Shown here piece after piece: positions 11,025-27,332 of a stretch of DNA of 64,000 nucleotides (position 1 is the stretch's first letter; every line of letters begins with the position of its first letter). The stretch spans positions 1 through 64,000 of the forward strand of contig MU626303.1 of the NCBI GenBank assembly GCA_025603075.1. The letters run 5' to 3'. A program made the position numbers and the translations under genes. The notes beneath the pieces were generated by a model. That model was not told the origin of the DNA and made no database searches. It was given only the letters and a program-made list of their open reading frames with translations. Origin of the DNA: Neoconidiobolus thromboides FSU 785. Its lineage: Eukaryota; Fungi; Entomophthoromycota.

Positions 11025-11646
11025 GATAAAAAGTAAGCCAAATTTTTCTGAAAACTTATATAAGATTTTTGATCAAATCTAGTAATCCGACATTATTCTT
11101 TGTCATTCTCTATTTTTGATATGAATCAAATTCCAAAATAACGTTACAATATAATATTAAATGGAAGTTATAATTATAAAATTTAAAGTTAATAAAGTTG
11201 ATTATTTAATAAGAATTTGTATTCTATTTATACTAGTCCGTATATTTGTTATAATAGTTGCGTAACCATTATCCTTATCAAAAAGTAATGAGTGACTACT
11301 TATACAATAAAAACATATTTAATGTTATATATTGTTACAACTAGGAAGTACTATTACATGGTTAATAGGTTAAGACTATAATAGGGACTGATATTAATAT
11401 AATGATAGAGTAATAATTTATAATAATAAATGTATAATAATGAGTTTATCTAACAATAAATATATAATGATTTAAAATCTAGAATATTTTTTTAATAAAA
11501 TTTACAATTACTAAATAAGAATTTAAGCCAATCAACAAACATATTAATCAAAGTTCTTTAAAAAAGTAATTATAAAGCACTCTAACTTCAAAAATAAAAA
11601 TTAATTTCTTATATTTCATTAACATTAACATTAACTTAAATCAACG

Positions 11647-12633
11647 ATGGTGAAACTTGGCCCCAATTTTATCCATGATTTTAAAAGCGTAATACAAACC
11701 AATACACGCTCACGACGTATAATGATTAGTATTTTATTACTAACATTATGGTCAGCCATTGTATTACCCGTTATCTTCAAACAATATTATGGCACTTTAA
11801 ACAAGGGGATTATCATACGTTCTGAAGAGGTAGAAGAAAACAATATGTTAGTAGAATTAAGTATAGCTAAAGTAGATACAGCTTTGAGAATTATTGATTT
11901 AAAAGTGAATTTATTCCCAAATGGACCATTATACGCCAATGACAATTCAATAACTAAACAAAACATCACTTGTGATTTTCGATATGGTAAAGTAGAAGCA
12001 ATAAAAGATAAAGTATCTCAACCAACTATTATCAAGATACCTATACTTTCAGGAAATCCAAGAGCGTATCCGTTTGAAAATTTAACTACTATAATACCTA
12101 TTTATTGTCAAGATCAACAAGGTTCTTCAGTTTTGCCAATTATTACCTTTGAACGTACATTGGCTACGTATTATCTTACTACAGAAGCCTTTCTTGCTTC
12201 ACACGTAGTGGAAGCTTCAACAGAATCGATGGGATTATTTCCAGATCCTAGTTCTATTCAATTATTAGTAGAATTAACACAACCAACTGAAAATCAATTA
12301 TTTGTATTCTTAGTGTTTTTTATAATGTGGGGATTAAGCTTTGCAATTTTATTTTTTACATTTGATGTTTTGATACATAAAAGGGAAGTACCTCCACCTC
12401 TTATTGGTGTGTCTTTGGCTTTATTATTCGCTTTACCAGGTATTAGAAATAGTCAACCAGGTGTTCCATTCTTAGGTTGTTTATCCGATTTTATTTCCTT
12501 TTTTTGGTAATTAGTTTTTAGAGATCTTTAATATAATATATTAAGTCATTTAATTAGGTGCCTAAGTTTAGTTTCCTTTTGTACAGTAGCTAACATGTTG
12601 GCTTTTGCACTAAGGTTTAATAAGAAAGTTTAA
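11647..12633 (+). CDS. DUF4436-like membrane protein, paralogue 1 (Pro-loop channel-like)
   Basis: N-terminal TM, beta-rich ectodomain with YPFE, three C-terminal TMs with PPPLI..LFALPGIRNSQPG; intron 12507-12557 splits the Trp codon; exon 2 CLSLVSFCTVANMLAFALRFNKKV. Confidence 0.85.
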
Positions 12634-13090
12634 ATTAGATCTAAATCAAACAATAAACCAATTATATTATACAAATAATGTTTTATTATTACAAGAACAT
12701 ACATTAGAGAAATATAGTTATTTTGTATTTGTTACATTCAATTTAATGAATAGAAACATTAGATATTAAATAAATATTATTTCAGATAATAAGATTTTTT
12801 AGTTTGTTCATTAAAATAAATTTATTTTATTATTCCTAATGTTTCTATTATCTAATACAATTTATGAATTTTAAAAAAAAATCGGGACTTTATTTAATAA
12901 TGTTTAATTTATTAGAATAAAATTAAAATTCTCAAATTTAGTAATTACAACTTTATGCTCCTATAAAAATGAATAAATTAATATACTAAATAGGAACAAT
13001 AATAAATTATCAATTGAAGTCCAAAAAATAGTCCAATTTTAACTTTGAAACAATAATAAGAATTTAAACATTTTTTTACTCTCAATAGAT

Positions 13091-14091
13091 ATGAGTTTGG
13101 AAATAATGAAAGCCCAATTTAAAGATATTTTAGAAAACCCATTACGAAGAAGATTAATTTATACAATAATAGGAATAGCTATTTATTTAATAATTGTATT
13201 ACCCATTGTATTAACATTAGAACCAAAGGAAGTGATTACTACTCAAACTAAAGAAGAGTTTGATAAGATACGCAATAACGATATCATAATAGCAAGGAAT
13301 CGAGTACAAGCCATTGATCCAATTGGAAAAAATATAACTATTTATTCACGTATACTTGCTTTTGGACAATTAGCTAATGATGTTGGTGTATTATCTCAAG
13401 ATTTAACTTGTTCTTTTTATTATGGTACACCTAAACTAATTGCTAATAAAATACCAGAGCCCTTATCTTTTACTGTACCATTAGTAGAAGGAGATATTAA
13501 ATATTATCCATTTGAACAATTCAAAGCATATATACCAATGAATTGTAATAATCAACAGATTACTGGCTTTTCAATGTTATTTGATGATGGAGCACCAGGA
13601 TATTCATTAAATCAAGAAATCAAACATTATTCGGAATTATCTGATGAAGAGAAAACTCTATTTTATGGCAAAGTGAGTGATGCAAATAATGTTATTTGTA
13701 TACTAAAATTTAGTCAATCTGCCACCAACAAATTCTTTTCAATTTTTGTTACTATTATTATGTGGTGTTTGGCAGTTGCTTTAATTATTTGTTCTTATCA
13801 AATAGTTGTATTGAGAAATGAGCCCCCTCCTCCTTTAATTGCTTTAGGTGTTACCTTATTATTTGCATTACCAAAGTTAAGAGATTCTCAACCTGGGGCT
13901 CCTAAGTTTAATGCTATGTCCGATGTGGCTGGATATTATTGGTGAGTGTTCTTTATTGTTAATTTTATTGTTTAGTTTTAAATTAATTATTTGTTTAAAT
14001 TAGGTGTTTATTTTTAATATCTTTATCAATTTCTTTAAATTTCTTTGCATTTGGTTTAAGATGGCGAAAAGCTAAAACTGGTGCAAAATAA
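13091..14091 (+). CDS. DUF4436-like membrane protein, paralogue 2
   Basis: Same architecture, YPFE, LFALPKLRDSQPGAP; intron 13942-14003 at the same TG|G position; exon 2 CLFLISLSISLNFFAFGLRWRKAKTGAK. Confidence 0.85.
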
Positions 14092-14329
14092 TTAATTGTT
14101 ATTAACTTGTTTTTCTTCAAATAAAATTCTATCTAATCTCGATGTTTTTATTGCTTATTTACGAACAACAATGTTGTTTAATTTTATCATATATTATGAT
14201 ACTAACTTAATATAAGAAAAATAATTTATCATTCAAAATAATATGTATAAAAACTCAATTGATACTAAAAAATTATATTTATAATGTTATAATTTTAAAA
14301 AAAAGAAAGCTAAGATCAATTGACACCTT

Positions 14330-15513
14330 TTACGAATCTTTCATTGAAATAACAACGGCAGAAATAAGTTCTAAATAAGGTAGAAATATAGGATGACTTT
14401 CCTTTGAAATGCCTAATAAGCCAAGTACTTTTGAAGTTGGTGGGTATTTAGAAAATTCTGATAATAAACTTTCTGCTTGAGCCATGGCTGATTCTAATTG
14501 ATGTTCATCAAGCCAACCATCTAAAACTTGGGCTGAATAAGCAGCTAATGCTAATAATACCCTTCGAAGTCTCAAAAATGGTGTTTGTTGTGGGTTTCTT
14601 GGATGATGCATAGCAGACAATGTTTGTTCATAAGGTAAAGTAAGGATTGAACGAATACTTGATGCTATATCTCGACGTACTTGTGGGGTGCGTAATGGGT
14701 AGACACTCATTTCAAATATAACAAAACTTCTAGTATCATTTCTTAACACTCCTTTTTCAACTAAGCCTTTTGCAATTCTTTCTCTTACCATTTTTAATTG
14801 ATAACCTAACTTATTAAAATTCCATGTTTCTCCTAAACAAATAACATTTTAAAATCAATGCTTTATCAAATGATATGAATTAAATTAAATATGAAATTTA
14901 ATTTATTAATTTCAAAAATAAACAAAAATTAATTACCGTTTAGATAAGCGATCCAATTTTTTAAATCTAATTGTTCTCTTGAAGATATCATTACTTTTAT
15001 GGCTTCATCTAGTAAAAATTCATCCAAACTTTCACCCTTTGTAATTGAAATTAATCGTTGGCTTGGTAATAAAATAGTTTGTGTTTTATTAACTGCAAAA
15101 GAGACTCTTTTTCTTAATGCTAACTCAGCCATGATACAAGCTCTTAATATATAACTAAGACTATCATTCCAAAATGATAGATGTCCCTAAAAATTGAATT
15201 CATATTAATATTCTAAAATATTTTCATTTCAACTCAAGGAAAATGCCATTTAATTATTTTCTGGTAGAATACATAACTCAATAATCTTTATAATCGACAA
15301 TAACAACAATAAAATAATTACCTCATCTTTTAATCCAAGTAAAAAAAGTTCTTCCATCAAAGTTAAAGCTGGTTTATAAGGGGACAAATTATAGTCTATT
15401 ACTTCTTTTTCTTCTTGTTCCATAGAATCATTCATTTTATTAATTTGTTCTTCGTTATAAGGGTCTTCACTAGTGAGACCAGCATTCTTACGTCTTTTCA
15501 TACCTTCCATCAT
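14330..15513 (-). CDS. VPS74: Golgi phosphoprotein 3 / Vps74 (GPP34) family, multi-exon
   Basis: LTLMEELFLLGLKD, LSFWNDSLSYILRACIMAELALR, LLDEAIK, ETWN...YQLKMVRERIAKGLVEKGVLR; first ATG at 15513 (ORF track start is TTG). Confidence 0.9.
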
Positions 15514-15787
15514 AATCAATTATAACTTTTAGTTTTAAGAAAATATAGCAATCAAAATACGATGAAGATGATAAGTTTTATCTATTTAATTAGCTTAATG
15601 ATATATTTGTTTTGTATTTTTAATTTACTTTTTATTTTGAATTGATAAAAGTTCCTTATCCAATTCAAGTGGATGTTATTAAAATGCATCAATTTCGAAT
15701 TTATGCAAAAATTGATCAAAATATTGAGTTTGGAAACTTAAAAAATTACAATCAATACGTTATACTTTCTATTGTTGATTTTCAATC

Positions 15788-16313
15788 ATGTCAAATAGGT
15801 AAAATTTAAAATTTAAAAGTTAATTAAACTATATTAATAAATAATTAAGGGGAAAAAATCAATATAATAGTGACTATAATGAATATAATATGGGAACCTC
15901 CACTTCAGACTCTTTATTATATGAGTCCCAAAATAATATGAAAATGGATGAGTTATCAAGTAAAGTATCTCAGTTACATAAAGTAAATTTAATCATTCAT
16001 CATTTGAACTATTAATTAAAACCAATCCATTAACTATTAGGTAACATTAGACATTCATGGACTTGTAGAAGAACAAAATCAAGCATTGGATGAATCCCAA
16101 ACTACATTTGATAGTTTTGGAGATAGATTAAAAAACACACAACATCGAGTACGAAATATGTTAACTTCACAAAATAGAAGAGTAATGATGTATGCAATAA
16201 TAATAATATTTTTCCTTTTTATTATCATTTATCATTATTTCAATCGTACTTCAGAAAAAGTAGAAGCATTATCAGAGCCTATCGAAGACTTTTTGCAAGC
16301 ACCTTTTTCTTAA
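15788..16313 (+). CDS. Qc-SNARE, Bet1/Sft1-like
   Basis: Probable exons from ATG 15788; SNARE heptad MDELSSKVSQLHK|VTLDIHGLVEEQNQALDESQTTFDSF with central Q, followed by a hydrophobic C-terminal anchor. Confidence 0.75.
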
Positions 16314-17529
16314 TCTATAGGATAATGATGTAATTTTTTTTAATGCTTAAGAAGCTTATTTATCGCAAATATATGCTTGATTTATTTCAATTGGAAGATT
16401 CAAGTTTAACATTTCTTTTATTAAATAATATATTTTAATATATTTTTTAGCTAAATGATTTTAATTTTATAAATATCAATTGTAATATAGAAATAGGATA
16501 TAGATAGGATTTAACGAGTGTTCATTTATTAAATACAAATTATGGACAAAAAGATTATTTTTGTAACTATTTTATTTAAAATTAGTTTGGGAATTAGTAA
16601 ACTATGCCAAGTAATACTGCTACTACAGCTCTATTGCAACCTAGTTAACCATTCATTTAATAATAAAGTTTTGCTAAAATTGTACTAAAATTGTATTAGA
16701 ATTGTACTAAAATTTAATGATTAGGTTCTAAAAAATCAAATAAGCAAATAACTAGCTCTAAAAACTATAACAAGTTAAGTCAAATAGAGTTGCAGCTGTA
16801 AGCCAACATCTTACATGGAAACCAAGAATGCTTTTTCTTTTGATGAGGTCTTAATGGACTGTAAAAAAAGAGGCTTATACAAAAAATTCTTTTTGTATAA
16901 AAAAGGAAGTCAATCAAAAATTACCAAATCAAAAATAAGTATAATTGTTTTTATATGCCCTAATTCCTAACCTACGATTTAATTTAATAAATATATATAT
17001 GAAAAATGACATGTCTTAAGTTGTTTTGAAGATATACCACCAATTTCTATTATGATTTACAAATCTATACTTTATCAAAAATTTTACTTTCTTCCCTAGT
17101 TTATTAAGACATCAACTTGTTCCTTTTGTGTTTTAAGTATTTTTTATAGAACATGAAATTTGTGAATATCTTACCATCAAATGTCTATTACCAATATTAT
17201 ACACAATCGTAAATATTTAAGTCTGTTTCTATCCAAAATTAACATAATTTCATTATATTACTAGTACTTTATATTGATTTTTATAAATGTATTAATATAT
17301 AAGTATAATAATACATTTAATTTATGTTAAAATATTTCAATTTATTTTTATGAATAAATTAGTATAAGTAAAACCTTATACTTATGCAACATTAATGATT
17401 CCTTAGATATGTTTTATATAATAACAAAATAGATAGCTTGAATTTTTTTTAAAAAGAATTAATATATTTTGAGTTTTTATTTTTATTGTTTTTATATAGC
17501 TTGAAGTTTAAAAAAAATAAATTAGTGAG

Positions 17530-17630
17530 AAATGGAGATATATTTTTATGTTTAAGAATTTTACTAACAATTTTTCCGCTCAAATACTGCTTAAGATGGA
17601 AAAAGTAATAAAGCCAAAACATCCTCAATT
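17530..17630 (+). mobile_element. family A repeat, copy 2
   Basis: Core TTTAAGAATTTTACTAACAATTTTTCCGCTCAAATACTGCTTAAGATGGAAAAAGTAA; degenerate termini. Confidence 0.8.
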
Positions 17631-17716
17631 ATAATTATTCTTTCAATTAAATTATAATTTTAAATTTCGTTAATAACAACTTTTGAGAATTAAAAAATTA
17701 ACCATGAAAAATAAGA

Positions 17717-17815
17717 ATTGGGGATGTATTTTTGTGTTTAAGAATTTTACTAAGATTTTCCACTTAAATAGTGCTTAAAAAATGGAAAAAATGAAGTCAA
17801 AAAACACTCCCATAA
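17717..17815 (+). mobile_element. family A repeat, copy 3
   Basis: TTGGGGATGTATTTTTGTGTTTAAGAATTTTACTAAG...ATGGAAAAAATGAAGTCAAAAAACACTCCCATA. Confidence 0.8.
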
Positions 17816-18080
17816 TTTATTATTAAAAAAGTATAAAATATTATATGTATTACTATTAGCTTAGTCCCAGAATGTTGAACATACAAACTTGAATAAAAAA
17901 ATGACCTTCAACTTCATTCAACTTTATAACCACTTTGCTTATAATATTTAGCTATAATAAAACTTTAAGGATTTAAATAGGGATAATTAATTTAGTTAGT
18001 GGGTAGTATGATATTATTTGAAATGTGTCCTATTTTTTTGCTATAAAATTCAAGCAGTAGGTGTCAGTTAATTCAGCTAA

Positions 18081-18233
18081 AACAGCTTACAGTTAGACAA
18101 CTTTATGTTTCAATTTATAACCAATTTCTTTTGATATGAATTTGAGAGCAATATTTTTTATATACCTTTAAATTTGTATTAAAAACGTAACTCCAAATCA
18201 AAAACAATGAAATATATCTAACTGTAAGTTGTT
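18081..18233. repeat. small inverted-repeat element, possible TA-CAGT MITE
   Basis: AACAGCTTACAGTTAGA (18081-18097) vs reverse complement of 18217-18233 AACAACTTACAGTTAGA, 16/17 identical; a 13-nt match TAACTGTAAGCTG recurs at 33211. Confidence 0.4.
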
Positions 18234-19224
18234 CTATTATTAATTTTAAAAAAAGATTAATATGGTTAGTGATTTATTACGTATACTTACATGATCGAGT
18301 TTAAAACATAAGCCTTTATATTAACCTTAAAAGTAAGCGATTGAAAAGTATTGCACAATGCATATTATTTGTTTACAAAAACTGTGAGTGTGAAATCTTT
18401 GAGATTTGATAATAAAACATTGGTGTTTTATTACCGAGTTAATAGGAATAAGAATAAATATAAAATGCTGTAACGTTGTTTAAGATACTTATTTAATGAA
18501 TGAATATCGAAGCCTTAATGCCAAGGTCAAGGAGGTAAATGAGCAGCCCAGGTAAATAAGTTCAGTATAAAATTTGGAGTATAATATATGAGACACTATG
18601 TTATATTAAAAAAACTTTTTTTTGACTATAACGTTGAATCGATTAACTGCTTTAGTAGGTTCGGGTTCGACTTAGCTTTGAGTTTAATTACTTTTGTTAG
18701 AATATGAGACAATTTAAATTATTGTTACAAACGTAATGTTCAAAGCCATAATGTTATTCATATTTAGAGTATAAATTTATTATACAAAATTGAATAACTA
18801 AATTAAGCTTAAAGCTAATGTAAGAATTTCTTGAATCAAAAATAAAAGAAGCTAATCATTTAGTCTTTGTTCAAAAATAGCTAACTTTAAGTGGTTAAGA
18901 ACTGGTCCTGCAACTTTTAACTATCACCTTATGTACTTTTTTTATTTTAAATTTAAAGATTATCATTGAAAATTTGGCTATAAAAATAAGATTACTATTT
19001 TTAATCATGTGAAACTAATTCAAGCCCCATTTAATTTTTGATAAGCCATATTATAAAATAAAATAGCTTTACATAAGGAATAATTCAAATAATTATATAT
19101 AAATAATACAGCCAACGTTTATCAACTTATTAAATTCGAAATTTAGTTTGTTTTCTTTTTCATCAAATTTCTATTTTTTTAGTATAGCATTAGGATTTAA
19201 TATATAAACAACTCGATATTTGAT

Positions 19225-19863
19225 ATGGAAGATAAAAGAAATAGTAAATGGTACATAACTTTATTAAATAAATTATCAACGAAAGGTGACAATTACGAAA
19301 AAAATAAATTAAATGACATTATAAACAATACAAGAGCGTTAGAATGTTCGATGGGTTTGGATACTACTTGCTATAAACCTAAACTATCTCATAACCCTAA
19401 GCCGATAAACAACGATGCCTGGTGTAAATCGTTTATTAAAGTATCCAATTTAGTAACAAATTGTCAATCTAATCGTATACACCAAAATCCAAAGCTATCC
19501 AAAAATGAAAATGTTATAAAGCGTTCTCAAACTATGAATATAACTAGCAATACAACCTATATGCAAAGTATCCGAAAACTCAGAAATAACCCAAGGAGGC
19601 CGTTACTTCAAGTGGTATTAATCCAACATATGGTACACAAAATACGGGATGATGATAGTGTCAATTTAGATAGAGAAATGGGAATCAATCGATTTTCTTC
19701 CGAGATACCTTGTCATTTGACTGGTGTCAAAAATCGGAAAATTAAAAGTTATCCTACTTTAGTTCAAATCTTTTCTAATGAGAAAGAACTACAAATGAAT
19801 TTACTAAACGTATATACTGAAGATGATGATATCCCTATAGCATTATTAAATAAGAGAAAATAG
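19225..19863 (+). CDS. hypothetical protein (212 aa, intronless)
   Basis: ATG-initiated 212-codon ORF in AT-rich DNA with protein-like motifs LRNNPRRPLLQVVLIQHM and DDDIPIALL; no family recognised. Confidence 0.6.
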   Translation: MEDKRNSKWYITLLNKLSTKGDNYEKNKLNDIINNTRALECSMGLDTTCYKPKLSHNPKPINNDAWCKSFIKVSNLVTNCQSNRIHQNPKLSKNENVIKRSQTMNITSNTTYMQSIRKLRNNPRRPLLQVVLIQHMVHKIRDDDSVNLDREMGINRFSSEIPCHLTGVKNRKIKSYPTLVQIFSNEKELQMNLLNVYTEDDDIPIALLNKRK

Positions 19864-19945
19864 TTTCTATAGAATAAAATTTACTGTTTTGATTTTATGT
19901 TCAATTTATTTATTCATTTAAACTAAAGTATTTAAACTCAAAACT

Positions 19946-20047
19946 ATATGGGAGTGTTTTTTTTAACTTCATTATTTTTTTCATTAAGCACTATTAAGCG
20001 GAAAAATTGTTAGTAAAATTCTTAAACACAAAAATACATCCCCATAT
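19946..20047 (-). mobile_element. family A repeat, copy 4
   Basis: Reverse copy ending ...GTAAAATTCTTAAACACAAAAATACATCCCCATAT, between convergent genes. Confidence 0.85.
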
Positions 20048-20102
20048 TATGTTTTTGTAAATTTTTTATTCAAGCAATTACAATAGTTAAAATACTAACT
20101 CA

Positions 20103-21056
20103 TTATTTAGGTAAATCGGAGACTGGCTTTCTCCATCTTAGAGCATAAGAGAACAAGTTAAACATAATACAGACTGCGATGATACCAATACACCAAAAGA
20201 AAGCAATATAATCGGCAAGACAACCCATAACTGGAGAACCAGCTTGAGAATTTCTAACACCTGGTAAAGCAAAAAGGATAGAAACACCAACAGCTATTAA
20301 AGGGGGAGGTACTTCACGTTTTTGTACAACAAAATCAAAGGTAATGATTCCATATGGGATGGATAGCCCCCACATAACTGCCATAAGGAAAAAGGAAAAA
20401 GCTTGAGTTGAACTAGGTGTATTTAATTTGATTTCAACTGCTACAGCATCTAAGTTGTCATATAAGCCAAGGAACATATCCTTGTTTTCGCCATTTCTAA
20501 TTGAATCTGCTTCTATTTCTGGTTTATGGCTTACTAAACTTTTATCAATTTGGATAACTAATGGAAGAGGTTTTTTCTTAGAATCTAGGCAAATAACAGT
20601 GAAATAGCCTAAATACTGTTCAACTGGGTATTCACGAATAGTTCCATAACTTATTGGGACAGTAAAACTAACGGTATTAATGGGTTGCCCTTTGATAATA
20701 GTTTGCTTTCCATATAACAAATCACAAGTAACGTTTTGATTTGAGTTTTGGAGCTCATCAACATAATCTTCGCCAATCATTTGAAACTTAGCAAGCAAGT
20801 TTATTTTACGGGCTGGGGCTTCTATTGATTGAAATGAGAGAGCCAAATTGACACCACTAAATGAATCTAGATCTTCAAATCCCTCGGATATATAATCTGG
20901 TATACTATTCTTTAATTCTCTTAAATCTGGGTTATGAACCTTCTTAACAACTGGAATGACGATAATGCACCAAATACAGACACCTATAAATGAGAGAAAG
21001 ATTCTCCTAAGTCTTGTTGTAGACATAATCTTTTCATATAAATCTTTAATTGACAT
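20103..21056 (-). CDS. DUF4436-like membrane protein, paralogue 3 (intronless)
   Basis: 317 aa; TRLRRI anchor, YPVE, PPPLIAVGVSILFALPGVRNSQAGSPVMGCLADYIAFFWC. Confidence 0.88.
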   Translation of the reverse strand: MSIKDLYEKIMSTTRLRRIFLSFIGVCIWCIIVIPVVKKVHNPDLRELKNSIPDYISEGFEDLDSFSGVNLALSFQSIEAPARKINLLAKFQMIGEDYVDELQNSNQNVTCDLLYGKQTIIKGQPINTVSFTVPISYGTIREYPVEQYLGYFTVICLDSKKKPLPLVIQIDKSLVSHKPEIEADSIRNGENKDMFLGLYDNLDAVAVEIKLNTPSSTQAFSFFLMAVMWGLSIPYGIITFDFVVQKREVPPPLIAVGVSILFALPGVRNSQAGSPVMGCLADYIAFFWCIGIIAVCIMFNLFSYALRWRKPVSDLPK

Positions 21057-21696
21057 TTTAAATCTTGTATATCCAATAATAATTTTTTTTATTAAGCTTA
21101 GATATTGCTATCTTCTTATTCTGTTTATTTATATGGTTTTAAAATTCCTCATTTCGATGTGTTGTAAAAGAACAAATAGATATTCTAAAAATATTAAAGT
21201 TCCAGCTAAACTGTTCTTTTACTTGATAAAAATAAGTTGATTAAATACTCCCCAGTTTCTGAGAAATAAACAATAAATAATAAACGATTGTTGTGATTAT
21301 GTTATATATTCTACTTAGATTTATATCATATACCTTTTTACTATTTAGAATCAACTTGAATGTTTTAATGATGTTTAAATATAGAAATTACAGGCTTAAA
21401 CTTAGAAGGATATCTATAATTATTAATTATTTTTATTAATCAAAAATTGATTTTTTTATTATAAATCAAAAAATAAATTAAGTTATAAAAACAAAGGTAT
21501 TGAAATAATAGTAGATAAAACTAGAATTTAATTAAGATAAAAGAATAATAATAATTGTACTGATTATATAAAAACTTATTGGAATATTGATTTAATTTCA
21601 ATAAGAAATATTTGTATGTTCATACAATATTTTATAATTTTTTAATATCTACTCTTAACAGTTCTAATAAAGAAATTAGAATCTAAGACAAATAAT

Positions 21697-21799
21697 ATAT
21701 GGGAATGTTTTTTTTGCTTGAGAATTTTACTAGCATTTTTTCCACTTAAATAACGCTTGAAATGGAAAAAGTAATGAAATCAAAAAAACATCTCCATCT
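21697..21799 (+). mobile_element. family A repeat, copy 5
   Basis: ATATGGGAATG...AGAATTTTACTAG...ATGGAAAAAGTAATGAAATCAAAAAAACATCTCCAT. Confidence 0.8.
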
Positions 21800-22329
21800 T
21801 TATTTTCATTTCCCTTTAATTTAAATTCCATTGTTTAGTTAAATAGTAGTTCATATCAATATCGAAAATTCTACCGCAAATAATAGAATTTATGCTTATT
21901 AATACTTCAGTATAATTTGTTTATGCTTCTTTATTATTCTAATAAAACAATAGAATCATAAATAGGAAAACATTTTTAATCAGGTTATATTTTGATTGAA
22001 TTTATTAAAATTAGCATTATGTGGTTGTATAATATAAAATATTCACAAGTTTGTAATAAAGAAAACCATTTAGAAAAAACCATGGAGGTTCCATGTTACT
22101 AAACATTATTTTTATAATATCAAAAGCTTGGTTTTATTTGTTTTTATTGTAAGCAATAATTATTGTCACAAAAAGGTTGAAAGTGTATTTCTACCCATTT
22201 ATAGTCATGATGTTCCATTTAAATTTATTAAAGTTTATCAAAATAGTTCAAGTTATTGAAAAATATAGCAATGAGTTTAATTTCTATAATCTTTATAACT
22301 TACAAGTAAATAGAAATGATTATAACTAC

Positions 22330-22391
22330 TGTTAGCCCGGAAATCCTTTATTATTAACAAAATTCTTAAACATAAAAATATATCTCCATAT
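22330..22391 (-). mobile_element. family A repeat, partial copy 6 abutting copy 7
   Basis: CGGAAAT...AAAATTCTTAAACATAAAAATATATCTCCATAT; shares the terminal ATAT with the next copy. Confidence 0.6.
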
Positions 22392-22489
22392 GCGGCTGTT
22401 TTTTTAGCTTCATTACTTTTTCTCTTATAAGCAGTATTTGAGCGGAAAATTTGTTAGTAAAATTCTTAGATAAAAATACATCCTCATAT
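22388..22489 (-). mobile_element. family A repeat, copy 7
   Basis: ...GCAGTATTTGAGCGGAAAATTTGTTAGTAAAATTCTTAGATAAAAATACATCCTCATAT. Confidence 0.85.
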
Positions 22490-23156
22490 GATGAAATTTA
22501 AAACATGTATATTGAAAGTTTTTTAAATTATAATAAACATTTATGTAGATTATTTAAATTAACAAAATCCTTTTATTACATTAAGGTTATTTGTAATAGA
22601 AATATGTATTCAGATAACCACTTTTTAATAAATTATTTAACTATGTTCATGTTCATGTTCATGTTCTTTGTTTCCCTTTAATAAATTTTAGGATCAATTT
22701 GGTGTTAGTTTATGATAAATCTTATAATTTATTAAAGATAACAAATAAAAGTTCTTCATCCTAACTTTTTGGCTATTAATAAGGATTATTCATATTGATT
22801 ATTGATAATTTGAAAAAATAAAATGTTACAAAGATTTAAGGAGCTTATTTCGTATATAAAATTATGTAAAAAAATACTTCTCTTCAAATTGTATACTGTT
22901 TATGTTTGTATACTTATTAATATAAACATGGTCTGAATTATTGTCACTCCGTCATAATGAATTAAATATAGAAGTGCAATAAGTTTTTAAAGATCCAAGC
23001 CTTTGTAAGATCAGGAGTAGAATAGAAGTATTTGAAAAAAATCCTTCTTTTAATAATTCTTATATGCAAATTGTATAAGAACCATTCATGAACTGAATAA
23101 AATTTAGGGCATTTTCATACATTTTAACTGGTAGAGATCTTACAAAGCATTATAGG

Positions 23157-23259
23157 ATATAGGAATGTATTTTTGTGCTTAAGAATTTTACTAATAATTT
23201 TTCCGCTCAAATACTGCTTAGAAGATGGAAAAAGTAATAAAGCCAAAACATCCCCATAT
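23157..23259 (+). mobile_element. family A repeat, copy 8
   Basis: ATATAGGAATGTATTTTTGTGCTTAAGAATTTTACTAATAATTTTTCCGCTCAAATACTGC...AAAACATCCCCATAT. Confidence 0.85.
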
Positions 23260-23860
23260 AATAATTTCAATGAAATATTTATAGTTTTTATAGCAGCAAT
23301 TTATTTTTTACATGACAAATAAGGTTCTAAACTGGCTATGTTCTATAAATTTTGAATATTTTAAAAATTATGTCTATTTAGTTAAGTACTGTTGTACAAT
23401 TGAATGATTATATAAAAGTACAATATTGCTTTATAAATATAAAGTTTTTTAGAAACTATTATTACATCAAACTGCTTTCTTATTTTGTATTATTGTCAAG
23501 GTTTATTACGTTTTTATTGTTTGTTTGTAGAATATTAAATTTTACATTGAAATTTTTGTTTATTTCAATTAGGACACGTTTTTATAGTATAAATTATACA
23601 TACTTTTGTAGAATCTATTTAAAGTTTATAATGTCTTATGCTTTTAACTAATTCAACGTAATCTTTGTGTTATAAAATCCGTTACTCAAAGCAAATATTA
23701 CAGTAAATTTTGACTATTATATTATAAAAAAGACATTGAATTGTAAATATATTTTGTTTAATCGGGATAAAGTATAAAAACATAAAAGATACCACTCTAT
23801 TTTTTATGAAACAAGAATATTTATTGATAATATGATATGCCTTTAAATGTTTTAAAACTG

Positions 23861-25015
23861 CTATTCTTGTAAATACACTTCCATACCCTCTCCCCATCTT
23901 AATTGCACCTCTGTATCATCAAAATAAATAGCTCCAAAAGAAGATTTAACCCACTCTATAGCAGCATAAATATCTTGGTTCCATTTAGTAATTTTGAATG
24001 TATTTTTATGAGTAATATGGAACTGAAGACGTTCTTCTGCCTTAGGCAAATGGGGTGTTAGCCTAATAGAATTTTCTTCGTCTTCAGGTGCATATAAATA
24101 TTGACCTCCATGTTTAATATAAGTAATTCCATCCCTTGTTTCACATGTAACTTCAAAGTCTACATTACTTAGTACTCCAATAAGTTCATTTTCGAAGATA
24201 TCAATGGCATCATGCTCATGGTAATCATCATCATCGCCATCATCATCATCATTATCTTCATCGTTGGACTTTTCTTCGTTATATATTTTTAATGAATATA
24301 TTTTATCTTCATCTACTTTTTCCCCTGCAAAGTCAATTAAATTAAAGTTTGGTTTTCTCTCAACTTTAGGCCTTCTGTTAGGCAATTCTTTGTCTTCTTG
24401 AATCAATTTGTCGATGTTGCTGATTTCTTCAATTACCATCCAGGTAACTCTGGATTTAAGCTGACTACTATATTTGTAGCTCATTGTTGTATTGTGAGTG
24501 TTAAAACATTGATAATTATCGTTGCCTAGATAAACAACAAAAAAATGGCCTTGGACATTTTTAGATTTCGCTATATCAGCAAATTTTAAAATATCCATAT
24601 CATCATAATACTCAACTACTGTATTATCTTCGGTTCCATTTCGACTTATAAAGTCATTTTCTCTCATGAATAATATGTATGGAAGCTCCCCATTTATTAC
24701 TATGTTATCAGCGATATATAAATTACCGAAGGGATAACTAATTCCATTTTTATTTGTGAATTCATTATAAAAATAATTTAGTCGATCACTATTTCTCATT
24801 ACTAAGTTCCTACAATTATAGTCGCATTTGATCTCTTTATTAAAAACATACATTGAAAAATAATCCTCTCTTAATACGGCAAAAAAATCTTCTTTCCTCT
24901 TTTTGATTTCAGCATCAATGTCTGGTACTTTAATAAACTCACAATTTTTATCAACCATGCATTTATCAATATTGTCAATATCAACTTCAGAATAAATTAC
25001 TACCATCCCAAACAT
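23861..25015 (-). CDS. hypothetical protein (384 aa, intronless, acidic tract)
   Basis: Long ATG-initiated uninterrupted ORF in very AT-rich DNA; DEDNDDDDGDDDD tract; no family recognised. Confidence 0.7.
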   Translation of the reverse strand: MFGMVVIYSEVDIDNIDKCMVDKNCEFIKVPDIDAEIKKRKEDFFAVLREDYFSMYVFNKEIKCDYNCRNLVMRNSDRLNYFYNEFTNKNGISYPFGNLYIADNIVINGELPYILFMRENDFISRNGTEDNTVVEYYDDMDILKFADIAKSKNVQGHFFVVYLGNDNYQCFNTHNTTMSYKYSSQLKSRVTWMVIEEISNIDKLIQEDKELPNRRPKVERKPNFNLIDFAGEKVDEDKIYSLKIYNEEKSNDEDNDDDDGDDDDYHEHDAIDIFENELIGVLSNVDFEVTCETRDGITYIKHGGQYLYAPEDEENSIRLTPHLPKAEERLQFHITHKNTFKITKWNQDIYAAIEWVKSSFGAIYFDDTEVQLRWGEGMEVYLQE

Positions 25016-25809
25016 TTCAATTTATTATAATTTAAAATGAAATCAAAGTAATCACTTGAGTTTATATAGTGATCAAAAATAATGATATCATTTTTGGTAA
25101 ATTTAATTTGTTATTTAATTTTGATATTTACCATTTAAATCAAGATAATTTAACAATATTATAATCAAATTCATTTTTATCACATATCTTCTACAAGCTT
25201 TATTGTTTTTAAAAAATAATATTCCTAATTCGGTCTGATTTACTCATTTAAAATACAAATTAGACCAATGATCGTTTTTATAATATAAATCTATTAACAT
25301 AAATTCTGTTTTTAAATAGTTTTACAAATAAAAAGCTTTTTTTAAACTGCAAAATAATTTAGTCACATCTCTACTTAATTGAATATTCTTTTAAATTATT
25401 AAATTATTTTATAGAATAGCTATCAAAATAATATAATTATATTTTTAGTTAACCAATTTATGAAAAAATCAAATTTATATATATATAATTCGATACTTTA
25501 TATTTTTCAGTATATAAAATTTTTAGAGTAATATTTATAATGTTTTTAATTAAATGACTTTTAAAGTTATAAATTGATGGTTGAGTAATAGCATTTAGTA
25601 TGTTTTAATATAATCTTATCAAATAAAATCTAAACCTGATATGAGGATAATAAAATAGATTATTGGAGATAAAAGGCGTAGTTTATAAAATAGTCCAAAA
25701 TAGCTTATTTTAATGATTTTGAATATTGTAACTAATTTATATGTTCAGTTATTTAATTGAAAAAAGCTCAATGTATTACTATCCTGTATGTATATTTAAT
25801 TAAATCACT

Positions 25810-26748
25810 TTATTTGAGTTGAACGGGTTTTCTCCATCTTAATGCAAATGCAAAGATATTCATCATTGAACAAATAGCAATGATAGCCATACACCAGAAA
25901 AAGGCAGCAATATCAGCTAAACATCCTATAATAGGTATACCAGGTTGAGAGTTTCTTAAAGCAGGTAATGCAAATAACATAGATATTCCAACAGCCAAAA
26001 GAGGTGGCGGAATATCCCTACGTGAAATTATAATATCATAAGTAAATACAAACAATGCAATAGATAACCCCCACATTACGATCATTACAAAAATTGAAAA
26101 AATCTTGGATTTAAGAGGTTGAGTTAGTTGAATAAAAACCCCCAGAGCTTCTGAACTTGTATAGGAGCCTTTGAATAATGGTATCAGTTCTTCAAGATCT
26201 TTAATAGGGCTTGAGCGAACAGCTGGAGAATAGGATAATAAATCTCTATCAGTTGTTATTGCAATTGGAATAATTGTTTTGTTAGTATCTTCGCAAGTAG
26301 CAGAAAAATAACTGGTAAACACTTCAAAAGGATAATCATCCACGTTACCATCAATGATAGGCACGGTAAAAGTAATCGGATCTGGAAGCTTGCCCTTAAC
26401 AAGGGCTGATTTAGCGTAAAGTAAATTACAAGTTATGTTTTCGTTTGGTACACCAAATTCATTTGAATATCCTCCAGATAAAAAAATATGAGAATATAAA
26501 TTAATTTTACGGGCAGCTGAATCTACCGATTGGAAATTAAGATGAAAATTAACCCCTTCAAAAGTTTCCTCAGTTTCTCCAGCTGGTATGTAAGATCCAT
26601 TGTCCCCAGATAAATTATTATCCTTGGTTAAGATCACGGGAAGAACGATTATGCACCATAAAGCTATCCCTATTATAAAGCATACAATTCTTCTAATCCG
26701 AGTATTTGAAGAGATTCTTTCATAATTATCTTTTATAAATTGAACCAT
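25810..26748 (-). CDS. DUF4436-like membrane protein, paralogue 4 (intronless)
   Basis: First ATG at 26748 (track start 26763 is TTG); TRIRRI anchor, YPFE, PPPLLAVGISMLFALPALRNSQPGIPIIGCLADIAAFFWC. Confidence 0.88.
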   Translation of the reverse strand: MVQFIKDNYERISSNTRIRRIVCFIIGIALWCIIVLPVILTKDNNLSGDNGSYIPAGETEETFEGVNFHLNFQSVDSAARKINLYSHIFLSGGYSNEFGVPNENITCNLLYAKSALVKGKLPDPITFTVPIIDGNVDDYPFEVFTSYFSATCEDTNKTIIPIAITTDRDLLSYSPAVRSSPIKDLEELIPLFKGSYTSSEALGVFIQLTQPLKSKIFSIFVMIVMWGLSIALFVFTYDIIISRRDIPPPLLAVGISMLFALPALRNSQPGIPIIGCLADIAAFFWCMAIIAICSMMNIFAFALRWRKPVQLK

Positions 26749-27332
26749 ATTATGTAAATGCAATATAAAAAATTATTTCTTAATTCCTTTAAACCGTTTT
26801 ATATAGTTACTTATAGGGGTGAATGAATAAAATTTGATAAAAATGGCAAAACAAATTAGCTTATGAAAACCTTAATATCATATTATATTAAGGGTGTATA
26901 CTTTTGATTAACTCAATATGCTCCATTTATGAAACTTGGATTAACTAAAAATAGCTTTAAATTAAAAATCTTTTAAAAATATATATTTTTACATAATAAT
27001 AAAGAATTTAGTGCATGAAGTATTCTTTATTCTTCATCTTTACAATGCTTCGTTAAACATGTTGGTAAAGTACAACAACATGATTTTTAAGCTATCGCTC
27101 ATTTTAGGTTATATTATTCTAAACACACTAAAGTATTTTTAATTTACCAGATATTAAAAATACAACTTACTCTCACTTTTGGACATGTTTCTATTAAGGG
27201 GGTTTGGAATTTATTGACGGAGGTTTATTGTCCCGAGCTAATTTTTTGCAAAAAATTATTGGTTTAAAGATCAATGTTTTTTCTAAAAGGTTTTGCTCAC
27301 CAGCTTTTTAATTTCATAATCCCCCGATCTTA

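Follow-up and report, generated by a model that had tools for sequence, protein, structure and literature searches.

Four intact DUF4436 (PF14494) genes, encoding proteins of 311, 312, 317, and 317 aa, were identified in the window, the whole 64,000-nucleotide stretch of Neoconidiobolus thromboides DNA that was analyzed. [quoted passage not shown]

The four paralogues (P1–P4), with pairwise identities of 30–46%, lie where the first-pass annotation had placed four proteins of about 310–317 aa (Table 1); its end coordinate, 26748, is the ATG start of the 312-aa form of P4. No fifth DUF4436 copy was retrieved within the window by tblastn. The RNA contigs of P1 and P2 were spliced at exactly the predicted introns. 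For P1, 11635–12505 was joined to 12557–12709, this 51-nt skip being present in contigs from four RNA runs, and the intergenic DNA had zero RNA depth. The fraction of sampled words present in the RNA runs was 0.6–0.72 for P4 and only 0.16–0.26 for P3, which is 77% identical to the N. thromboides protein P0002. P1, P2, and P4 are transcript-supported, and the support for P3 is weak.

Table 1. Coordinates of the four DUF4436 genes and of the structural elements of P4 (window positions).
Feature	Position	Strand	Remarks
P1 exon 1	11647..12506	+	ORF; residues 1–287, ends with first two bases of Trp codon
P1 intron	12507..12557	+	51 nt, GT..AG, phase 2 inside Trp codon of FFW
P1 exon 2	12558..12633	+	Remaining M3 and C-tail, including stop; protein 311 aa
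P2 exon 1	13091..13941	+	ORF; RNA contigs
P2 intron	13942..14003	+	62 nt, GT..AG; position and phase as in P1 (YYW)
P2 exon 2	14004..14091	+	Including stop; protein 312 aa
P3	20103..21056	-	ORF; single exon, 317 aa
P4	25810..26763	-	ORF; one exon; 317 aa with TTG as start, 312 aa with the ATG at 26748
P4 TM0	26626..26688	-	Residues 26–46; N-terminal signal-anchor helix, in-to-out like pLGIC M4
P4 beta1-beta2 loop (VDSAAR)	26509..26526	-	Family conservation: Asp81 88%, Pro82 73%
P4 Pro-loop (GNVDDYPFE)	26323..26349	-	Tyr144, invariant Pro145, Phe146, Glu147
P4 pre-M1 (LTQP)	26116..26127	-	Gln215; Arg at this position in 97% of the family and in 94% of pLGICs
P4 M1-equivalent helix	26023..26115	-	Residues 217–247; no mid-helix Pro
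P4 M2-equivalent helix	25951..26007	-	Residues 253–271; LFALP motif
P4 M2-M3 loop (SQPGIPIIGC)	25921..25950	-	Pro274 96% conserved; Pro277 and Gly280 invariant
P4 M3-equivalent helix	25840..25920	-	Residues 282–308; invariant Asp284, FFW motif at 288–290

DUF4436 is an uncharacterized family of membrane proteins. All four proteins matched its Pfam model at E values of 2e-14 to 2e-21 (5.7e-19 for P1 and 1.9e-14 for P2), and because all of them pass the gathering score comfortably, they are true members; the initial label "DUF4436-like" named the right family too cautiously. Clustered at 50% identity, the family comprises 1950 clusters or more, many of them bacterial, and is widespread in bacteria, algae, and fungi. 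It is not a fungal invention, and the initial description of an expanded fungal family does not hold, as the putatively channel-like family is DUF4436 as a whole. P1–P4 and a Neoconidiobolus orthologue form a clade of their own (support of 99/99), which differs from DUF4436 at large: Glu takes the place of Asp in the Pro-loop and Gln or Thr that of the pre-M1 Arg, the beta9-beta10 (loop C-like) hairpin contains an insert of 13 residues, and a Cys-x44-Cys pair is present. The replacement of the pre-M1 Arg had been overlooked in the first-pass annotation.

Each protein consists of an N-terminal TM helix (TM0), a beta ectodomain of approximately 170 aa, shorter than the 190 aa estimated initially, and three C-terminal TM helices. 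This layout is confirmed by the AlphaFold2 model of P4, where a helix at residues 21–46 is followed by about nine beta strands between residues 71 and 214 and by helices at 217–247, 253–271, and 282–308. Hydropathy and the positive-inside rule agreed with the modeled layout, R-x-RR preceding TM0 and RWRK lying at the C-terminus. With its 19 residues, the M2-equivalent helix is short, and nearly all of it is hydrophobic.

The P4 model (pLDDT 93.2, pTM 0.84) and a replicate model of the bacterial member P0078, built from its own alignment (pLDDT 94.7), were obtained from 73–75 diverse sequences without templates. A Foldseek search of the PDB with P4 gave at least 500 matches at E≤1e-3, of which the best 50 were all pLGICs (E of ~1e-7, probability of 1.0); the best 50 for P0078 were likewise all pLGICs (E of 6e-9 to 4e-8). 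In VIA-align, a search independent of Foldseek, places 1–19 among 48,161 PDB chains were occupied by pLGICs at Z of 8.7–10.3, a Z of ~10 being only slightly above the three-helix-bundle background (Z of 8–9.5), with 204–225 residues of P4 aligned. The alignments covered the ectodomain and M1–M3 (model residues 67–317 on, for example, GLIC 17–284 and sTeLIC 10–285), and their partners were GLIC, ELIC, sTeLIC, GABA-A, and nAChR; other rows covered the three-helix part only (~80–95 residues). P0078 aligned with GLIC 16–283, ELIC 11–296, and sTeLIC 10–285 (Z of 8.6–10). Only pLGICs were full-length PDB matches to both models, although the global TM-scores were only ~0.4–0.5 (below 0.5 in Foldseek), with an rmsd of 5–6 Å and sequence identities of 9–16%. 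All 30 AFDB Swiss-Prot matches of P4 were pLGICs, ELIC included, and in the ESM Atlas the nearest clusters after those of DUF4436 all carried Neur_chan_LBD (TM of ~0.5 over residues 69–311). The best AFDB cluster match (24% identical, TM of 0.84) bore the automatic name [quoted passage not shown]. A non-pLGIC ectodomain had been specified beforehand as evidence against the reading; the predicted ectodomain and M1–M3 superpose on solved pLGICs.

Because the search yielded no experimentally solved DUF4436 structure, the structural evidence consists of predicted models throughout, and AlphaFold2 might have bent a poorly informed sequence to a memorized pLGIC shape. We regard such an artefact as extremely improbable, because the confidence was very high for diverse, template-free alignments, two members only ~20% identical gave one fold, and independent DUF4436 models of the ESM Atlas and AFDB superposed on that of P4 (TM of 0.66–0.84). 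The P4 model also shows traits foreign to pLGICs, namely the presence of TM0 and the lack of M4.

In sequence searches, a profile of 75 family sequences ranked two octopus chemotactile pLGICs first among 177,635 PDB sequences (E of 0.001), with YPFD aligned on YPFD, Arg on the pre-M1 Arg, and M1 on M1. The octopus pLGICs were still first with a 112-sequence profile (E of 0.04), which added the Torpedo AChR beta subunit in the same register; the match was marginal and was lost with smaller profiles. The lack of any significant profile or structure match to pLGICs had been specified beforehand as evidence against the reading; the profile match obtained was marginal in E value, first in rank, and correct in register. 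Pfam Neur_chan_LBD and Neur_chan_memb, which the first-pass annotation had proposed for comparison, matched none of the 145 family members (75 searched at E up to 10 and 70 at E up to 1). The pLGIC-like reading of that annotation is supported in part, by the fold and, weakly, by the sequence.

The motifs quoted initially are all present, and their correspondences to pLGICs fit family conservation and the published signature residues of pLGICs (Table 1 of Jaiteh 2016). YPFD, the pre-M1 Arg, and the M2-M3 Pro form a common signature of like spacing at the interface of the ectodomain and membrane domain in pLGICs. Family frequencies were 93% for Tyr144, 100% for Pro145, 92% for Asp147, 97% for Arg215, 96% for Pro274, and 100% for Pro277, and along the series Pro, Arg, Pro the first step was 70 residues and the second 59 or 62, compared with 72 and 55 in GLIC. 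The near-universal Asp-Arg interface pair is changed to Glu and Gln/Thr in the four window proteins; their YPFE variant is known from a nematode pLGIC (Jaiteh 2016). The family alignment contained no M1 proline, no clearly conserved beta9 Trp, and no C-terminal M4.

These data bear on convergence, by which an unrelated beta sandwich and three-helix membrane bundle would have acquired short motifs by chance. The low identity, the silent Pfam models, the marginal HMM match, the Foldseek TM-scores, and a TM architecture unlike that of pLGICs are compatible with it. We nevertheless consider convergence improbable, because among 48,161 PDB clusters only pLGICs matched both domains in order, for two independent models, and the best sequence matches PDB-wide were pLGICs in the structurally correct register. 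Moreover, the rare YPxD, Arg, and Pro signature falls at near-equal spacing on top-conserved columns, and a paralogue-like protein bears an automatic Neur_chan_LBD name. Homology of DUF4436 to pLGICs is very likely.

Among prokaryotic pLGICs (GLIC, ELIC, sTeLIC, and DeCLIC), as predicted for DUF4436, the beta-sandwich ectodomain leads straight into M1–M3; VIA-align of the DUF4436 models gave Z of 8.6–9.5 over ~210–220 residues (GLIC 16–284, ELIC 11–296, and sTeLIC 10–285). Both groups have a YPxD Pro-loop without a Cys-loop, a pre-M1 Arg (in DUF4436 at the family level), an M2-M3 Pro, short loops without a large cytoplasmic domain, and stand-alone genes in bacteria. Unlike these channels, DUF4436 proteins have an N-terminal TM helix in place of a cleaved signal peptide and a smaller ectodomain, and they lack both the M1 proline and an M4 following M3; Pfam Neur_chan models are silent on them. 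Metazoan Cys-loop receptors (GABA-A beta3, GlyR, GluCl, nAChR, ZAC, and octopus CRT1) were the top Foldseek and VIA-align matches, and the octopus match of the profile extended from YPFD through M1; however, DUF4436 lacks the Cys-loop disulfide (the Cys-x44-Cys of the window clade sits elsewhere), the M3-M4 cytoplasmic domain, and M4.

According to the model, the N-terminus would be cytoplasmic, and the signal-anchor TM0 would run in-to-out through the membrane; a short additional strand would then climb the ectodomain and lead into the pLGIC-type beta-sandwich, followed by the M1, M2, and M3 equivalents and a cytoplasmic C-terminal end. TM0, the least conserved TM helix in the family and oriented as M4, may take the peripheral, lipid-facing place of M4, in which case the protein would be a circular permutation. 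Conservation in the family is highest at the tip of the beta1-beta2 loop, in the Pro-loop (YPFD), at the pre-M1 Arg, in the M2-M3 loop, and at the tops of M2 and M3. Among the four paralogues, identity was highest in M2, at 65%, reached 55% in the M2-M3 loop and 48% in the Pro-loop, and was lowest in the ectodomain strands and beta9-beta10 loop (16–24%). Because the strongest family conservation sits at the contact of the ectodomain and membrane domain, a pLGIC mechanism is the most likely one: an ectodomain event (ligand, proton, or ion binding) would start gating, the signal would travel via this interface to M2, and a pore would open that is built by M2 helices from several subunits, probably five.

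DUF4436 proteins could instead be true but very distant pLGIC relatives that now lack, or always lacked, pentameric channel activity, serving as membrane-anchored sensors or receptors with partner proteins, in another stoichiometry, or as structural membrane proteins. A common fold does not imply a common function, and the missing canonical M4 and M1 proline, the short hydrophobic M2, the loss in the window proteins of the Asp-Arg pair by which, in pLGICs, ectodomain and pore are coupled, and the fused cytoplasmic modules of relatives (F-box and TPR in P0064) are in line with this alternative. We judge it rather unlikely, since conservation peaks at the coupling interface and M2 top, as a gated channel requires, and M2 is the top-conserved segment among paralogues. 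Furthermore, ELIC with M4 deletions is still functional and gates (PMC8327344), and the bacterial members, which are stand-alone genes, had no conserved partner gene beside them. Their gene neighborhoods equally contained no functional hint in favor of a channel. An oligomeric channel function of DUF4436 proteins is somewhat favored, and the co-located paralogues may assemble as heteromers.

To our knowledge, the pentameric ligand-gated channel (neurotransmitter-receptor) superfamily has been reported as absent from fungi; the transcribed fungal DUF4436 genes described here are predicted to encode proteins that fold like subunits of this superfamily.

Four related ORFs, termed P1–P4 (paralogues 1–4), were identified in the window, which is strongly AT-rich (G+C of approximately 25%). 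The ORFs of P1 and P2 are separated by 580 bp and those of P3 and P4 by 4.7 kb, and the encoded proteins of 311, 312, 317, and 317 aa share a mutual identity of 30–46%. The only Pfam family matched by the four proteins was DUF4436 (PF14494), whose gathering score of 23.2 bits was exceeded by all of them (68.9, 54.1, 65.4, and 77.1 bits; E-values of 2e-14 to 2e-21), and no further DUF4436 copy was found in the window by tblastn. The uninterrupted ORFs of P1 and P2 end directly after an FFW/YYW motif; both genes carry GT..AG introns (51 and 62 nt, phase 2, within a Trp codon), and removal of these introns restores the last helix. Exactly the predicted P1 and P2 exon joints were present in contigs from four RNA runs, and thus, both genes are transcribed and spliced as predicted. 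The RNA contigs covered positions 11635–12709 and 13073–14142, with a depth of zero in the intergenic DNA. For P4, a fraction of 0.6–0.72 of the sampled words was found in the RNA runs, and for P3 only 0.16–0.26. The ORFs, the DUF4436 matches, and the spliced RNA contigs confirm that four paralogous membrane proteins are encoded here, as observed in the first-pass annotation.

RNA run X1 (organism A) showed no base differences from the window in P1 and P2, and runs X2–X4 (organism B) showed approximately 30 single-base differences (11700–12610 and 13800–14105). X3 and X4 additionally contained a second joint that connects 12508 to 12565, the intervening bases being five other letters, GTTTG. 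This pattern suggests another strain or a different allele of P1.

Features of the window with their positions, strands, and assignments
Feature	Position	Strand	Pfam match
P1–P4, four related ORFs	11647-26763	P1 and P2 +; P3 and P4 -	DUF4436
GPP34 (Golgi phosphoprotein 3/Vps74 family) ORF pieces	14330-14791 and 14929-15132	-	GPP34
Multi-exon GOLPH3-like gene, adjoining P2	14330-15519	-	
212-aa ORF, upstream of P3	19225-19863	+	no match
Intronless 384-aa ORF with acidic D/E-rich stretch, between P3 and P4	23861-25015	-	no match
13-residue insert in beta9-beta10 hairpin of P4 (residues 187-199)	~26167-26205	-	
Cys-x44-Cys pair of P4 (residues 112/157)	~26293-26430	-	

The structure of P4 was predicted with AlphaFold2 from a 75-sequence alignment without templates, and residue numbers refer to this protein. 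The model (pLDDT 93.2, pTM 0.84) comprises an N-terminal helix extending to residue 46, approximately nine strands within 71–214, and helices at 217–247, 253–271, and 282–308; hydropathy recovered the same four membrane segments. The N-terminal TM helix is referred to as TM0 and the three helices after the ectodomain as M1, M2, and M3. When the model was compared with the PDB by Foldseek, at least 500 matches were obtained at E ≤ 1e-3, and the best 50 were all pLGIC (pentameric ligand-gated ion channel) subunits (GABA-A, GlyR, GluCl, and nAChR) with E-values of approximately 1e-7 and a probability of 1.0. VIA-align, which is independent of Foldseek, placed 19 pLGICs on top among 48,161 PDB representatives (Z of 8.7–10.3), aligning 204–225 residues over positions 67–317 of the model, i.e., the ectodomain and the three helices, to residues 17–284 of GLIC, 10–285 of sTeLIC, and 33–292 of the octopus receptor. 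The non-pLGIC rows aligned approximately 80–95 residues of a three-helix bundle, or up to 127 with the N-terminal helix. Matches in AFDB Swiss-Prot were pLGICs only, ELIC among them, and in the ESM Atlas, DUF4436 clusters came first, followed by Neur_chan_LBD clusters with TM-scores of approximately 0.5 over residues 69–311. A bacterial DUF4436 member (P0078), 20% identical to P4, was modeled as a replicate from its own alignment (pLDDT 94.7). Its best 50 Foldseek matches were again all pLGICs (E-values of 6e-9 to 4e-8), and VIA-align matched it to GLIC 16–283, ELIC 11–296, and sTeLIC 10–285.

In the predicted models, a pLGIC-type beta-sandwich is thus joined directly to an M1–M2–M3 bundle. 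Both modeled proteins superpose on the pLGIC ectodomain and M1–M3 by Foldseek and VIA-align (in VIA-align with approximately 215–220 aligned residues spanning the two domains), which agrees with the ectodomain fold expected when the four paralogues were read as fungal pLGIC-like channel subunits. The global TM-scores to pLGICs were modest (0.35–0.5, with an rmsd of 5–6 Å), and the VIA-align Z of approximately 10 exceeded the helical-bundle background of 8–9.5 by a small margin. For these predicted models, the weight of the fold evidence lies in the aligned length, the matching of both domains in order, and the exclusivity of the pLGIC match.

The profile match to pLGICs anticipated in the first-pass annotation was obtained only in part. 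Neither Neur_chan_LBD (PF02931) nor Neur_chan_memb (PF02932) of Pfam was matched by P1–P4 at E ≤ 1, and both were absent from the families listed for 145 DUF4436 members (75 scanned at E ≤ 10 and 70 at E ≤ 1). A single-sequence search of the PDB returned no match, and an 8-sequence fungal and a 12-sequence bacterial profile returned no pLGIC from the PDB. A 75-sequence profile, searched against 177,635 PDB sequences, ranked two octopus chemotactile receptors (pLGICs) on top, although marginally (E 0.001); the HMMER alignment sets YPFD on YPFD, runs through beta7–beta10, sets Arg on the pre-M1 Arg, and continues into M1. With a 112-sequence profile, the octopus receptors were still first (E 0.04), and Torpedo AChR beta was added in the same register. 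Since the pLGIC match is lost with small profiles, a broad profile is required to obtain the sequence signal, which is marginal even then and, taken alone, only suggestive of kinship with pLGICs. The best AFDB cluster match to the P4 model (264 aa, 24% identical, TM 0.84) was automatically named 'Neurotransmitter-gated ion-channel ligand-binding domain-containing protein'; thus, a signature database already touches a relative.

The residues conserved across pLGICs gather at the ECD–TMD interface (Jaiteh 2016, PMC4795631). They include [F/Y]PxD in the beta6–beta7 loop (Pro 100%, Asp 93%, Glu 3%; Jaiteh 2016 Table 1, PMC4795631), a pre-M1 Arg that is present in 94% of pLGICs and forms a salt bridge to the Asp of [F/Y]PxD, a Pro in the M2–M3 loop (88%), a mid-helix Pro in M1 (14'; 77%), and a buried Trp in beta9 (71%) (Jaiteh 2016, PMC4795631). 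The Pro-loop of DUF4436 (Tyr144 93%, Pro145 100%, Phe146, and Asp147 92%) conforms to [F/Y]PxD, the pre-M1 position is Arg215 in 97% of the family, and the M2–M3 loop contains Pro274 (96%) and Pro277 (100%). In DUF4436, the pre-M1 Arg lies 70 residues beyond the Pro-loop Pro, and the M2–M3 Pro residues follow at a further 59 or 62; the corresponding distances in GLIC are 72 and 55. No conserved M1 Pro was found in 217–247 of the DUF4436 alignment, and the alignment columns of strands 167–186 held no strongly conserved aromatic residue as an equivalent of the beta9 Trp. In P1–P4, the Pro-loop reads YPFE or YPVE and the pre-M1 column is Gln, Gln, Thr, and Gln; Glu147 and Gln/Thr215 replace the Asp and Arg in these proteins and in the Neoconidiobolus relative. 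The most conserved DUF4436 columns also include Asp81/Pro82 (beta1–beta2 loop), Gly139, Phe222, Phe225, and Trp231 (M1), Arg249, Leu263, Phe264, Ala265, Arg270, Asn271, Gly280, Asp284, Phe288, Phe289, and Trp290, and the most conserved columns are at the same ECD–TMD interface as in pLGICs.

Among P1–P4, identity was highest in M2 (65%), followed by the M2–M3 loop (55%) and the Pro-loop (48%), and lowest in the ectodomain strands and the beta9–beta10 hairpin (16–24%). TM0 was the least conserved helix. Such a pattern would be expected if channel subunits shared a pore and differed in their binding surfaces, and it is no proof of a channel. The insert in the beta9–beta10 hairpin, at the place of pLGIC loop C, is present in the P1–P4 clade and gapped in 70–99% of the DUF4436 members. 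A Cys-x44-Cys pair flanks the Pro-loop region in all four proteins (Cys 109/154, 107/152, 111/156, and 112/157). This pair is distinct from that of the metazoan Cys-loop, and most of the family has other residues at the two columns (Leu 42%, Ala 24%).

The helices are arranged differently from the canonical M1–M4 order, as three follow the ectodomain and one TM helix precedes it. In canonical pLGICs, all four helices come after the ectodomain, and both termini are extracellular. Because of the charge pattern, with R-x-RR ahead of TM0 and RWRK at the C-end, the N- and C-termini are predicted to be cytoplasmic and the beta domain to be outside; an N-x-T sequon in the ectodomains of P1, P3, and P4 fits the outside location. 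A cleaved signal peptide was rejected as an explanation of the N-terminal helix, which is preceded by 18–25 cytoplasmic residues ending in R-x-RR; its length of approximately 20 residues and its retention across the DUF4436 family also argue against cleavage. TM0 crosses the membrane from in to out, as does M4, and because of this direction, a circular permutation with TM0 in place of M4 is topologically possible. Deletions of M4 in ELIC accelerated desensitisation and did not abolish function (PMC8327344), and thus, a core consisting of the ECD and M1–M3 can gate.

An exhaustive profile search retrieved at least 1950 DUF4436 clusters (50% identity) at E ≤ 1e-3. Genome contigs with DUF4436 came from Verrucomicrobiota, Acidobacteriota, Chloroflexota, Cyanobacteria (Pseudanabaena), and Actinomycetota, and Atlas and AFDB clusters extended the family to chytrids, basidiomycetes, and other eukaryotes (unnamed or 'Uncharacterized protein'). 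The nearest named relatives of P1–P4 all came from Zoopagomycota and were hypothetical proteins (Neoconidiobolus thromboides, Entomophthora muscae, Dimargaris, and Dispira). In a maximum-likelihood tree, P1–P4 formed one clade (support 99/99) with one other sequence and a Neoconidiobolus orthologue of P3 (77% identity to P3). The long branches indicate that P1–P4 are old paralogues and not recent tandem copies.

Several relatives were fused or repeated, including AFDB D8QEF3 and A0A164P5L7. One 631-aa product (P0017) contains two DUF4436 repeats, another (P0064) has TPR, F-box, and FBO_C ahead of DUF4436, and an 881-aa AFDB protein named for the GPCR family 3 profile has a DUF4436-like module at 512–858; other AFDB matches carry the name 'TRP C-terminal domain'. 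These relatives may be gene-model fusions. A 513-aa protein of Dispira simplex (P0007) resembles two adjacent DUF4436 genes merged, and in its first copy, the region surrounding the FFW motif, where the intron of P1 and P2 lies, is absent.

Gene context was compared for 80 bacterial loci from Verrucomicrobiota, Acidobacteriota, Chloroflexota, Cyanobacteria, and others. The neighbors were conserved only inside clades and were unrelated housekeeping genes (SIS-domain protein, BFA1-like, kinase, TIM-barrel protein, and LeuRS), which points to a stand-alone gene; no operon or functional clue was obtained from the neighbors at these loci. In the window, the two GPP34 pieces match successive parts of the profile and therefore belong to one multi-exon gene.

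Few receptor families have been studied as thoroughly as the pLGICs. According to the reference inventory, no pLGIC is found in fungi or in plants that are multicellular (Jaiteh 2016, PMC4795631). In the literature searched, no paper tying DUF4436 to pLGICs was found, nothing relevant was retrieved for pLGICs combined with Foldseek, domains of unknown function, fungal genomes, or circular permutation, and the sole mention of DUF4436 was an entry in an expression table. DUF4436 is not a pLGIC family in the strict sense, as matches to the Pfam models, M4, and the M1 Pro are lacking, as is the pre-M1 Arg in P1–P4. DUF4436 is nevertheless likely to be homologous to the Pro-loop receptor superfamily, and the balance tips slightly toward a putative channel function with pentamer formation. 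A fuller reading, which we hold tentatively and at a little under an even chance, is that DUF4436 is a large, unrecognised sister branch of the Pro-loop receptors whose fourth membrane helix was relocated from the C-terminal to the N-terminal end, that its members are putative pentameric gated channels in bacteria, algae, and fungi, so that fungi would have pLGIC-type receptors, and that the old diverged, partly neighboring paralogues of this entomophthoralean-like fungus would be chemosensory or pH-sensing, possibly heteromeric, channels.

If DUF4436 is a rearranged pLGIC branch, the superfamily would gain at least 1950 clusters across bacteria, algae, and fungi, and gating would require, at minimum, a unit of the ectodomain and M1–M3, the peripheral helix being movable. 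The natural loss of the Asp–Arg pair in the P1–P4 clade would provide a ready-made test of the essentiality of this pair. For fungi, a rearranged branch of this kind would add a class of candidate ionotropic receptors, with potential sensors and drug targets.
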